A DNA stretch of 64,000 nt from Podarcis bocagei (Eukaryota): NCBI GenBank assembly GCA_964188305.1, contig OZ076888.1. One strand, 5' to 3'. The first letter of the stretch is position 1; the number at the start of each line of letters is the position of its first letter. The notes under the pieces are model-generated. The model made no database searches and was not told the DNA's origin. It saw only the letters and a list, made by a program, of their open reading frames with translations. Shown here in pieces: positions 53,541 through 62,630 of this stretch. The position numbers and the translations under genes are program-made.

Positions 53541-55033
53541 TCCCCCCCCCCAAAAAAAACCCCTGGTGTTATGTTGGCCATTTTCTCATCCTCAGGTAGA
53601 GATGCAAAAGAGTACCCTCACAAACTTTTTACTCCCTTGTTATCCAGATGTCCAGGCTCCTCCCTAGAGGGTCTCCAGCTTCTCATGTATCTAAAGATTT
53701 GTGGTGGCGATCTTTGTTTTTAACAGTGTGCTCTTCTACTTTTTAAAATATGTATCCTTCATTGTCCACTTGCATTCTTTTGCTAAAGTTTGTGTTTCTT
53801 TTCGTTCTCATTTGGACAAGGCTTCCATTTTCTGAAGGAAGTCTTCTTGCCTCTGTGGAAAGCCAGCCCACTTCATATGTGGAGAACCAGCTTCTATTTA
53901 CCACCGCTGATTCACCAGGTGGGTGGAGAGGTTCCTATTTTGTTCCCACTCCCACCATTGTACTCACATTTCAAATCCTGCCACCGCTGTATATCTCTGC
54001 TCTGCTGGTTTACCAAAGCCTTAATCCACAGTTGTGGTATTTTAGACATGGTACAAAACCAGCCAGACCCGCTTTATAAGTAAATATGGGTGACCAAGAA
54101 TTTCTACCCAGCAAGCGAATCAGAAGTTAAATTGTAGAATCCTTTAACTTGGCATAAAAATAACCCAGCTCTTCCAAGATCAGTTTTATGCAACTAAGCA
54201 ACTGACAGCCACCAAGGGATACTTAACTCTTCACATAACCTCACATACAGAAATGAACTCTTGTATGTTGAATACAAAACAAACACTGTCCCAGTAAACA
54301 AATTTTAAAATATGATTTCTCCACAGCCTCCAACAGCTTTATTGATGTGGCTTGTTAACCGCACTAATGTTTTATTGGCCTCGGTGGTACCTTTCCTGAG
54401 CTGCCATGTACAGTTCAGCTGATCTTCTGTTACTATCGTTTTGAACAAAATTATTTAAAATTTATTTTAAAGTATTTGAAACTCCAGCTCACCCATCTTG
54501 GTTCGGGGGCTTCTGGTATTAGTATTTAAACACTTGCACATGGTGCCTCTCTCCAAATGTCTTTGGCACAAGATATTTTGCTTTATGGCTCTTTCGCTTC
54601 TTTTAATCGCTCTTGTGTGCCCCTGGGCTCTCAGTGCATCATCCTACACCCTCCTCTATTTGAACCTGGCGTCTATAGCCCTAACTATTGGCATCTATAT
54701 CCCTAACAACATCTAAATCCCTAACTATTGCCCATGCTGTCTGGGGCTGATGGGATTTGCAGTCCAACAATATCTGGAGAGGCACAGGTTATCCCCCTCT
54801 CCAAGCACAAAACCTAATAGCCATCTTTCTGAACTTCTAAGCTTTTTAACGAATGCTTGTGAACCAGTTGCCTTTTTTCCACAAATCGCTTTCAAAGCTG
54901 TCATCCAGCAAATATGCTTTGATCTAATGGCACTTGAGCAGCCAACATCAAAGTTAAATTAACACCTCCATCCCAAGAAACAGCAAAAGTGATATAGTTG
55001 AGTTGCATAGTTCAGGGCTGTAATTCCTCCCGC

Positions 55034-55186
55034 CAGTGGCGTAGCGTGGGTTGTCAGCACCCGGGGCAAGGCAAGTAATTTGCGCCCCCTAACCCGTGGA
55101 TTTTAGCACTTGAGTGCGAGCGCGCCCCCCCCAGATGTTGCGCCTGGTGCAGCCGGCCCCCCTGCACCCCCCACGCTATGCCACTG
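55034..55186. mobile_element. Complete hAT MITE unit forming the left part of the composite
   Basis: Closely similar to 62399-62545. Its right TIR carries one C>T change (CCCACGCTATGCCACTG) and is not followed by the TSD. Confidence 0.88.
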
Positions 55187-55581
55187 GGAACAGCTAAGGG
55201 AGCTGGGCATGTTTAGCCTGGAGAAGAGGAGGTTAAGGGGTGATATGATAGCCATGTTCAAATATATAAAAGGATGTCATATAGAGGAGGGAGAAAGGTT
55301 GTTTTCTGCTGCTCCAGAGAAGCGGACACGGAGCAATGGATCCAAACTACAAGAAAGAAGATTCCACCTAAACATTAGGAAGAACTTCCTGACAGTAAGA
55401 GCTGTTCGACAGTGGAATTTGCTGCCAAGGAGTGTGGTGGAGTCTCCTACTTTGGGGGTCTTTAAGCAGAGGCTTGACAACCATATGTCAGGAGTGCTTG
55501 ATGGTGTTTCCTGCTTGGCAGGGGGTTGGACTCGATGGCCCTTGTGGTCTATTCCAACTCTATGATTCTATGATTCTATGA
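55187..55581 (+). mobile_element. Young CR1 LINE 3' end inside the composite hAT
   Basis: [29 protein letters not shown]...[30 protein letters not shown] is the CR1 ORF2 C-terminus; (TTCTATGA)n tail. Confidence 0.95.
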
Positions 55582-55819
55582 GGCTGTGTCAGATAGGGTG
55601 GAAATTTCATCCTTTCTGTCCCTCACATGGGAAACCGAAAAACACCCTCTCAGAATTAACTAGGGACCAGGATTACCAAAGCCCCATTCTCCCTGCAACC
55701 GCTTGGGTATCTGGTGGGCACCCAGTGAAATTATTTCCAACCACAAAGTCCAATACAAAGTATTTTTGTGGTAGGGAAGGAGTTTCAGCTTTGCCTTGTG
55801 GGCTGTTCCTCCAAGCTGT

Positions 55820-56560
55820 CTTTGCGGCGCGTAACAGCCTGGAAGAGAATCAGCGAGAGGATCTTTAGAATTCAGTGCAAATTGAATTTCACCGGAATAG
55901 CTCGGAGGTGCTGGCAGCCCTCTTCCCTCCCCCCCCCCACGCTTTTTCGTTTTGTAAACAAGTGATCGGACTCTTCCCCTCCCCTCAGCCCCATGAAACA
56001 AGTCCCCAGCGCGAAAAGAAATAATATTTTTTTTAAAAAAAGAAGATAACAAGGACGGGGTGTTTTCCAGAGCGAGGTGGAAGCCGCCCATCGCAAGGGC
56101 AGAATCTCTGCGGTGCGTAATTACGCGCGGCTTGGAGAGCTCTTTTCCCCCCATTACCCGGGCCCTAGCGGTGCCCGCGGCAAGGTGAGGTTCTCCCTCT
56201 CCGGCAGGCGCCTCTGCGCGCCTTCACCCCATTCTCCAGCCCCGCCACATCTGGGAACATCATTAAGGAGTCGCCTCTGCAGCTCAGGAAGTTTTCACAC
56301 TTCACGTTTCATTAAACGCAGGTCTTCTCGGATTCCTTGGGAAAGGGAGAAGCGGGAGAGAAAGGGGAGAGGCGCTGGGCGCGGGTCGGGGGAGAGCGCC
56401 TGATTTGCAGCTGTTGGGCTTTCAAAGCCAAATAAAATGGCCAGTCTGCGGAGCGCAGCCGCAGCGGCGGTGGGGGGCGCGCGCGCGCTAGGGCGCAAGG
56501 CTGGCAGTGGCGGCGGGGAGCCCGGCGGAGGAAGGAACTTGTCCCTTCCCTCTGGACTCG
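55820..56560. promoter_or_regulatory. CpG-island-like segment carried inside the composite hAT
   Basis: High GC and CpG density (gcgcgcgcgc, gcggcgg) in an otherwise CpG-depleted window; contains AAAATGGCC (YY1-like), TAATTA and TTGTAAACA (forkhead-like) motifs. Confidence 0.45.
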
Positions 56561-57182
56561 CGCCCCCCGCAGATGTTGCGGCCGGTGCGGCCGGCACCCC
56601 TGGCACCCCCCACGCTACGCCACTGCCTCCCGCACCTCTGACCACACATACTGTGGGGCCTCTGTGCACCCAGATGAAAGGTTTGAACCAAATACATGCT
56701 GGTTTGCATTGGGTGTGTGAGTGTGAATGTGTATATCGGAATGGATGCCGGTTAAACTTTATGATGCCATTTATATGTAGCTGATTCTGCGATATTTCAG
56801 CAATGTTCCATGACTGCAAGTAATTAGTGCACTTACTTAAGCATGATGGTACCTACATATGTAATATAGGAACGCTTCTGGACTCACTGACCGCACAGCC
56901 CTATACATGTCTTCTCAGAAATAAGTCCCGATTGAGTTTAATGGGGCTTAGCCCCATGTAAGCAGGTATAAAATTGCAATCTGAGTTATCCCAGATACTG
57001 GCCATAAAGCCTATTCATATAGTGTGAACTTACCATTTAAAATGTTATAGCCACTGTTTGATCCAAAATTTTTAAAGCGAATTTGTAGCCAAATTTCCAC
57101 ACTAATGGTGGGTTGCTGCAGAATTGAGAAAAGTTCAGTGGCTGTAGTCAGTCCCTTTATGTACCCTCAAATTCCTCTAGCC

Positions 57183-57314
57183 CAGGGTTTCCCAAACTTG
57201 GGTGTCCAGCTGTTTTTTGACTACAATTCTCATCATCCCTGGTCACTGGTCCAGCTAGGGATGATGGGAGTTGTAGTCCAAAAGAGGCTGGAGACCCAAG
57301 TTTGGGAAACCCTG
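57183..57314. mobile_element. hAT-Charlie-type palindromic MITE
   Basis: CAGGGTTTCCCAAACTTGGGT ... ACCCAAGTTTGGGAAACCCTG; TSD CTCTAGCC / GGCTAGCC (6/8). Confidence 0.85.
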
Positions 57315-58547
57315 GGCTAGCCAATGAATATCAGAGTTATGAGCATGTGCATGGGGATAGTCTGTTCATGGCATTTTATTTATTTAATACCTAGTCCTCC
57401 AGAATTCTGATATTTTGGAAGTAGAGGAGATGAGGAGAGGAACTATGAGTCTGCCTGAGCTATAGCAAACCTGGTTATTGTGATGAAACTTTGCCTTCAG
57501 CTAATGATTGCTGTCACGGGCAGGACTTTGGCTCAGTGCTACCGTCTCTTGCTGTTCTCTCTCTCCTCTGAACTGAGTTTGCAAACTGACAGCTCACAGC
57601 AGTCAGGGGGAAGTGGCATGGAACAGATGCCTCCCAAGCCACGCCCACCACGATGCTTGTACACATGCCGCACAAATGAAAATATTGAGGATCTCTTCCA
57701 GATCTTTCACAAAAGTCAGGTGTTTTGCAAGGCAAGAAAAAGCAGCTTTTGTGTATGTTATTCTTGAACACCACCTGAATAATGACAATGTCATATGACA
57801 ACATGCAATTTTAAAAACAACAAGAACAACCCAGGAACTATACCACTATAAATGGTAAGTGGGGAAAGGCCCTCAGCCTTTGGTGTGTGGAGGTGGGAGG
57901 TATCTATGCAACTACTGCATCAGGGGATGCTCATGTCGAGCACTTTTCAGAGAGATGAAAGAAGTCAAGGCAATGTCCCAGCTGGCACTGTGTTGTGGGG
58001 GAAGCCAAGGTCTAATTTCTGTTGCCTGTCTGTACATGCATCTTTCCCTAGGCCCTTCTTCCCAGTGTTCATGGATTGCTTACTGGAAAGCTGTTTCCCT
58101 CTGGGGATTCTTTTAAGATGCAGGCTTGATTAGTACCACTGCATCTGTGGCAGCAGAGTAGACTATGCTCGTTGGGAACCAAGAAGTAAACACAAGAGCT
58201 TGCAACTTCCTGTCTCAGTTGTGTCTGAGAGTTTGGCAATGAACAGGAAGCAATTGTGCCACCCATGCACAGAAAACCTTTACCACCCTGCCTAGGTCAC
58301 ATGTGGCAGACCACACCATGCATGTACTTCTTTGCCTCTAAAGAATGAGAGGGGGGTTTCCCCTAGCTGCATGTACCATTGAATTCACAACAATTTAAGG
58401 TCTGGTTTTATCAGTTCTGTGGTGCACCACAGAACTCTGTGCTCCCATGATCAGCACACATTCATGCAATCTGTGCATGAGAGGTACTGTCTGTCTCAGA
58501 AAAGCATCCTCGTCATATCTGTAATTAACTGTTGAGATGGCTTTTGC

Positions 58548-61962: not shown

Positions 61963-62398
61963 CGTCTGTTAGTGAGTAGCTTTCCCCTTGTTTATATCTC
62001 CATTCTACCATAGCATCCCCTTGTCAGGAAATAGTGCCCAAGGGTTACAGCTTAAAAGGCACACATTTAGAAATATATAAAAGCAATGCTGAATCTTACA
62101 GGCAGCTGTGGTGTACTGCCGGTGCAGAAGTATAATAATTGTGTATTTTGTGTAAATAACATTTAAATAGGCCTGTACTGTTCACGAAGCAATGGCTGCT
62201 CTGCTTCGTCGTCTTCTAATGTGGATTTATGCATACCCACATGAATTGGTGTGTTGGCAGTTTATCTTTAGGCCCACATACTCCGTTTTAATCTGATTGG
62301 AGGATGGTGCTATTTATACAGGTTTAGTGGGTGGTTTGTTAAAGTGACAGAGCAACCTGATCTTGACCTTCCGGAGCACCCAGAGATGGCCAAAATAT

Positions 62399-62545
62399 CA
62401 GTGGCGTAGCGTGGGTTGTCAGCACCCGGGGCATGGCAAGTAATTTGCGCCCCCTAACCCGTGGATTTGCGCCCCCTAACCCTAACCCCCAGATGTTGCG
62501 CCTGGTGCGGCCGGGCCCCCCTGCACCCCCCACGCTACGCCACTG
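62399..62545. mobile_element. 147-bp hAT MITE (minimal form of the 55034 family)
   Basis: Perfect 17-bp TIRs CAGTGGCGTAGCGTGGG; perfect 8-bp TSD CAAAATAT (62391-62398, 62546-62553). Confidence 0.95.
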
Positions 62546-62630
62546 CAAAATATAGAGTAACTCTACTACGACTTCTGCTTTCCCACTCTGCCCTTTATTG
62601 AGCAGATTTCAAAGAAGACGTTGTTGTGAG

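Follow-up and report, generated by a model that had tools for sequence, protein, structure and literature searches.

The window analysed here, 64,000 nucleotides of Podarcis bocagei DNA (GenBank assembly GCA_964188305.1, contig OZ076888.1), contains two MITEs that lie on the + strand in direct orientation and enclose 1318 bp made up of the 3′ part of a LINE and of CpG-island-like DNA. The question raised by this locus is whether the enclosed DNA belongs to the site or was carried there between the two elements, and if so, by what route. The features referred to below are the following.

55026-55033: left copy of the target site duplication (TSD), CCTCCCGC, from the sequence and from its single copy in the empty-site contigs of organisms D, E and F
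55034-55186, + strand: MITE1, a complete 153-bp hAT-type MITE, from sequence and alignments
55187-55581, + strand: 3′ part of a CR1-type LINE, from its mid-ORF start, high copy depth and tail
55582-56504: low-copy cargo, from composition and contigs
56505-56625, + strand: MITE2, a degenerate 121-bp MITE, from local alignment, shuffles and control windows
56626-56633: right copy of the TSD, CCTCCCGC, from the sequence and the empty-site contigs
62399-62545, + strand: the sibling, a simple MITE in the same family as MITE1 and MITE2, with CAAAATAT as its 8-bp TSD

Outer ends and target site duplications

The composite unit is 1592 bp long (55034-56625) and has perfect inverted ends of 17 bp, the outer pair being complementary at 17 of 17 positions. 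The left terminal inverted repeat (TIR), CAGTGGCGTAGCGTGGG, begins at 55034 and its perfect reverse complement finishes at 56625. Short TIRs of hAT elements begin with 5′-YARNG, and the CAGTG which opens CAGTGGCGTAGCGTGGG fits this motif. By allowing up to 3 mismatches, the TIR motif was detected at five sites in the 64-kb window, compared to 0.06 expected. These five are the two outer ends of the unit, an inner end and both ends of the sibling MITE.

A TSD was present only around the outer ends, where CCTCCCGC occurs on both sides; the probability of such an 8/8 match by chance is 1.5e-5. The inner flanks, GGAACAGC to the right of MITE1 and AAGGCTGG to the left of MITE2, are unrelated to each other. 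The initial annotation, made from the letters of the window, had likewise assigned the 8-mer to the outer ends and not to the inner one, and the positions 55026-55033 and 56626-56633, with GGAACAGC following the inner end, bear this out. Duplications of 8 bp, as expected of a non-autonomous hAT element, thus surround the composite (CCTCCCGC) as well as the sibling (CAAAATAT). The succession of MITE, host DNA and MITE in direct orientation, with one outer 8-bp TSD and unrelated inner flanks, is the signature of a composite transposon.

When the unit was compared with the window by BLAST, the matches were the sibling, the two right arms mutually and weak partial copies of the LINE, and no other kinds were seen. 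Elements of the hAT superfamily are mobilised by transposases that have BED or hAT dimerisation domains. No transposase ORF, transposase remnant or known domain was found in or near the unit by Pfam searches of six ORFs inside it and four nearby.

The MITEs

The sibling MITE serves as the reference for a normal insertion of one element. Its TSD CAAAATAT occupies 62391-62398 and 62546-62553, in agreement with the earlier reading of this copy as an example of an 8-bp duplication. Over its whole length MITE1 is 86% identical to the sibling, with 72 of 78 positions matching in the left arm and 57 of 61 in the right arm in a gapped alignment; CpG transitions account for two of the differences in the right arm. 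Over the first 70 element positions, the left arm of MITE1 has one mismatch in the MAFFT alignment. The left, outer TIR of MITE1 (55034-55050) is perfect, and its right, inner TIR (55170-55186) carries a CpG transition, C>T, at 55179. The initial annotation had correctly described a complete MITE extending from a left TIR at 55034 to an inner right TIR ending at 55186, and had also noticed the C>T change (the T at 55179) in this inner TIR and the perfect state of the outer one ending at 56625.

The middle of the sibling (62446-62495) carries a tandem repeat of GCGCCCCCTAACCC-like units, and MITE1 has at the matching place (about 55115-55126) a different, partly palindromic filler, GCACTTGAGTGC. 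Since the two fillers differ, the middle of this MITE family is variable.

For the distal piece, only the right ~65 bp of a second MITE had been recognised in the initial annotation. This has to be corrected, because the left-arm homology resumes at 56505 and the piece is a whole, degenerate MITE. A local alignment of the MITE against 56400-56625 spans the distance from the first base of the element (56505) to its right end (56625). The left arm of MITE2 scored 44-46 in local alignment, and the maxima were 28 for 206 GC-rich control windows of the cargo, taken on both strands, and 31 for 1000 dinucleotide shuffles. Deletions of 2 bp and 1 bp at 56513-56518 have broken the inner left TIR of MITE2 (CAGTGGCG--GCG-GGG), and no such damage affects its perfect outer right TIR (56609-56625). 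Both outer ends of the composite are accordingly perfect and the inner ends of MITE1 and MITE2 are both damaged.

The right arm of MITE2 matches the sibling at 55 of 61 positions and MITE1 at 53 of 61. It is thus farther from MITE1 than MITE1 is from the sibling (57/61), which argues for two separate elements and not for a duplicated arm. A target duplication of ~65 bp of one MITE, brought about by CR1 insertion with 3′ transduction, was considered as the source of the two right arms and rejected: 8 of 61 positions separate the arms, whereas MITE1 and the sibling are much alike, and the distal piece has a left arm of its own. An inverted MITE fragment suspected at 56443-56504 was also discarded, as 30-41 of 500 dinucleotide shuffles equalled its score and the alignments were inconsistent.

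The LINE part

The sequence following MITE1 starts in the middle of an ORF with GGAACAGC and ends in a (ATTCTATG)n-like tail. We take this LINE to be a CR1, from its C-terminal motif and the ATTCTATG-like tail; a Pfam search gave no match for this part. From 55187 onwards the repeat has very high copy depth in the contigs of four public sequencing runs from lizards, and partial copies occur elsewhere in the window. Loose contig ends from all four runs show that other LINE copies run upstream of 55187 with ...GGTCTGGAAACCAAGCCTTATGA. The LINE is therefore cut in mid-element exactly at the end of MITE1, as expected if MITE1 had entered a CR1, and the description in the initial annotation of a 5′-truncated CR1 beginning exactly at the MITE end is confirmed by these upstream continuations. 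The GGAACAGC at 55187 is presumed to be the right TSD copy of the original insertion of MITE1. The flanks of MITE1 are discordant, with unique DNA on the left and the middle of a CR1 ORF on the right. It follows that the TSD partner of MITE1 itself is absent at the locus, as is the left half of the CR1 with the other GGAACAGC.

The sole Rfam match in 54500-57200 was to MESTIT1_2 (55138-55365, - strand), which overlaps the end of MITE1 and the CR1 part. With 34 bits against a gathering threshold of 80 and an E value of 0.007, it is sub-threshold and most likely due to chance or repeat-derived.

Empty and filled sites in related lizards

Contigs of the four public runs, X13 (organism F), X17 (organism D), X20 (organism E) and X15 (organism B), were placed on 54000-57600. 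The contigs which decide the state of the site were as follows.

X13 (organism F), record 1: 54000-55025 joined directly to 56626-56929, with no extra letter
X17 (organism D), record 17: the same direct join of 55025 to 56626
X20 (organism E), record 23: the same direct join of 55025 to 56626
X15 (organism B), record 8: left flank and 24 bp into the left end, 0 differences
X15 (organism B), record 13: 21 bp inside the right end and right flank, 0 differences

The empty allele in organisms D, E and F reads ...GTAATT-CCTCCCGC-ACCTCTGACC... and has a single CCTCCCGC. An empty allele of this kind had been predicted for related species in the initial annotation, and it is present in all three of these organisms. 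Excision of hAT elements usually leaves footprints. As one clean sequence is common to three species, the empty state is ancestral, and the clean empty sites identify all 1592 bp as a young insertion. The target site is thus empty for the whole unit, in which two elements in direct orientation enclose non-element DNA.

Organism B is the best-matching species and has both filled junctions, without any branching of contigs at the junction. Flank divergence between organism B and the others was 0.6-2.9%. Of the insert itself, the short contigs of organism B confirm only 24 bp at the left end and 21 bp at the right end, and the continuity of MITE1, CR1, cargo and MITE2 rests on the assembly. The earlier proposal that the 1592 bp had inserted as one unit is supported by the empty sites, the TSD and the filled junctions in organism B. 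The observation named there as one that would refute it, 55187-56558 being native DNA at the locus, was not made: organisms D, E and F have an empty site, and their genomes, which lack the insertion, contain the cargo at other places.

Two repeats in the neighbourhood were observed during the placement of contigs. A palindromic MITE at 57177-57320 has 64-nt arms that are 89% complementary (ccagggtttcccaaacttgg...ccaagtttgggaaaccctgg) and is very high-copy in all four lizard runs. Its GATGGGAGTTGTAGTCC-type core is found also at 54735-54779 and is the source of many joints in the contig table. At 54672-54730, three imperfect tandem units of 19 nt (TCTATAGCCCTAACTATTG) adjoin a high-copy repeat fragment.

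The cargo and its occurrence elsewhere

From about 55900, the cargo has a GC content of 56-63% and a CpG observed/expected ratio of 0.82-0.85, compared to 40-43% and 0.20-0.27 in the flanks. It contains a splice-donor-like AAG|GTGAGG with the GT at 56185-56186. Judged from the sequence, the cargo may reasonably be regarded as a promoter with a non-coding first exon.

The cargo had no match in Pfam, none above threshold in Rfam and no related proteins, and BLAST detected no second copy of it within the 64-kb window. Exact look-ups of the cargo ORF (55660-56154, - strand) and of the junction ORF (55110-55565, + strand) gave no match, and the 164-aa ORF was without relatives in a word search. From this lack of matches the cargo and junction ORFs are not considered to be genes.

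Contigs carrying cargo were found in two of the organisms with an empty site, in record 24 of X20 (organism E) and record 3 of X13 (organism F). In organism E, 55555-56451 is represented by a contig of 896 bp, in which 6 differences and a single gap were counted (99.3% identity). Its depth is 155, compared to 15.9 for the contig of the unique flank, and a second contig with a depth of 73 continues to 56517. These depths correspond to about ten copies of the cargo in organism E, a figure which is indicative only, contig depth being a poor measure of copy number. In organism F, 55555-55919 lies on a contig of 368 bp with the depth of a single copy, and in organism D 55694-56056 is covered at low copy (about one copy). 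The low divergence of the cargo (organisms B-E) was looked at as an anomaly and dismissed, as 0.7% falls within the flank range of 0.6%-2.9%.

The presence of the cargo elsewhere in genomes without the insertion makes it foreign to the insertion site, and organisms E and F show host-derived filler with a parental copy elsewhere. These contigs begin inside the CR1 tail and read across 55582. The junction of CR1 and cargo therefore predates the insertion and belongs to the source. The approximately tenfold depth of the cargo in organism E fits a unit able to multiply; the copies could also have arisen by segmental or tandem duplication and not be transposed copies. The GC-rich, single-copy part at 56057-56419 was absent from the contigs of organisms B, D and F, and this is read as a drop-out of coverage.

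The approximately 80 bp to the left of MITE2 (56422-56504) were multi-copy in organism B without the rest of the cargo. Short contigs that derive from other loci extend leftwards across 56505, namely record 10 of X15, which covers 56422-56525 with 3 differences and a depth of about ten copies, as well as X15 records 11 and 12 and X17 record 18. The depth of X15 at 56057-56419 is none. One contig in the 56422-56504 stretch diverges at 56448. The multi-copy contigs may represent forms of the unit shortened by deletion, or relatives older than it, and they are not predicted by a simple composite model.

Origin of the unit

The unit is probably a composite transposon, or macrotransposon, of the maize Ac/fAc kind that moved as one unit. 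The anatomy of the unit, its TSD, the empty sites and the presence of the cargo elsewhere are direct observations, whereas we infer how the donor was built, that the move took a single step and what part the damaged inner ends played. At a native locus in another part of the genome, two MITEs of the same hAT family would have come to lie ~1.3 kb from each other in the same orientation, MITE1 by insertion into a CR1 that closely preceded a CpG island and MITE2 by insertion into the island or a first-intron region. A hAT transposase acting in trans would have paired the two intact ends, the left one of MITE1 and the right one of MITE2, and skipped the two inner ends, both of which are now damaged. 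The whole 1592 bp would thereafter have been cut out or copied and inserted at CCTCCCGC, where the 8-bp duplication was made, in the lineage of the window species after its split from the three sampled relatives. Defective inner ends would favour the use of the outer pair; the decay of these ends may also have followed the move rather than preceded it.

The cut of the CR1 exactly at the right end of MITE1 and the matching outer TSD with a mismatched inner flank would also be accounted for by recombination, a possibility raised in the initial annotation. In this case, a longer non-autonomous hAT element that already carried the cargo, inserted at this site or present earlier as a family, would have received a nested MITE in direct orientation in its CR1 part, and unequal recombination between its own left arm and that of the nested MITE would have deleted the intervening DNA and left the complete MITE at the left terminus. 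Recombination between elements and extraneous DNA that includes CR1 are both on record for non-autonomous hAT families of lizards (PMC3014272), and the right-terminal ~200 bp (56422-56625), which are multi-copy alone in organism B, resemble the arm of a longer family. Such a history is nonetheless unlikely: it takes three events instead of one, the four runs showed no intermediate, and a composite ancestor would be required in any case, since MITE2 keeps a degenerate left end of its own. Formation in place, by insertion of a simple MITE at CCTCCCGC followed by a break or excision that was repaired from an ectopic MITE copy, with synthesis running into the CR1 and CpG island, corresponds to the gap filling which is the commonest origin of single-copy animal Pack-TIRs (PMC8277862), and it would let the two right arms derive from different MITE copies. 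It is still less probable, as organisms D, E and F, the outgroups, show an empty site and not an element devoid of cargo. Gap filling leaves partial arms around the filler, whereas two whole elements are present here, MITE1 with both termini intact, and both termini of the unit abut the TSD exactly. It would further place two events on a short branch and leave the approximately ten copies in organism E unexplained.

The contigs of organism B, which reach 24 bp and 21 bp into the insert and leave the inner junctions unbridged, are compatible with an assembly chimera, in which organism B would have a simple MITE only and the assembler would have passed via this MITE into the native locus of the cargo and back. 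A chimera is very improbable, for it demands two misjoins within 150-bp repeats, one of them compensating for the other so as to lead back to the starting locus, and the window is without any N letter.

Relation to known systems

A unit of this kind is already known from hAT macrotransposition in maize, from animal Pack-TIRs and from filler-carrying hAT families in Anolis. Macrotransposons of the hAT superfamily in maize excise, reinsert with 8-bp TSDs and can rise in number (PMC9910405). As far as the maize Ac/fAc cases (Huang and Dooner 2008; Wang et al. 2022) are summarised in that source, the lizard unit resembles them in using the termini of separate nearby insertions in direct orientation, in moving the intervening DNA along, in having one 8-bp TSD around the whole and perhaps in a copy number that can rise. 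By the same summary the elements differ, those of the lizard being ~150-bp vertebrate MITEs, and so does the size, with 1.6 kb in the lizard compared to 10-28 kb in maize. The Ac/fAc events summarised there were observed genetically, whereas the lizard event is a natural one that is inferred from comparative data.

The animal Pack-TIRs (Tan et al. 2021, PMC8277862) share with the lizard unit a TIR transposon, in most cases a hAT, with host-derived non-TE DNA and a parental copy elsewhere. Multicopy Pack-TIRs for which outgroups lack any element at the site were ascribed to transposition, and the lizard unit, whose outgroup locus is without the element, fits this transposition-dependent class (PMC8277862). 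In a typical Pack-TIR a single element holds the filler, and partial arms and microhomology are seen, whereas in the lizard unit the cargo lies between two whole MITEs; no lizard is mentioned in the text of that paper (PMC8277862). In Anolis carolinensis, the hobo-N families (Novick et al. 2011, PMC3014272) are likewise lizard non-autonomous hATs with extraneous DNA, CR1 fragments included, and inter-element recombination. They differ in being families of 1.3-3.4 kb with nested TEs, and they were not described as a MITE-host DNA-MITE arrangement with a CpG-island cargo and empty sites. A search of the literature gave no description of such elements in lacertids.

Maize genetics has documented well that host DNA moves naturally between the ends of two separate cut-and-paste transposons, and vertebrate cases with both the filled and the exact empty site are rarely caught. 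The locus described here points to a young, apparently active hAT family in lacertids that can relocate more than 1 kb of CpG-island DNA. Elements of the hAT superfamily tend to insert in open 5′ regions. A composite arises when two of them insert there close to each other, and the cargo would become locked in once the inner ends had decayed. Should the organism E copies prove to be transposed ones, they would offer a tractable amniote system for the shuffling of promoters and exons by DNA transposons. It is doubtful at present, though it may be entertained, that the unit represents a currently mobile family which carries a working CpG-island promoter together with a splice donor and a non-coding first exon, has reached about ten copies in one wall-lizard-type species and is still inserting in another. 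If this were true, the family would be a natural vehicle that spreads ready-made alternative promoters and first exons into vertebrate genes.
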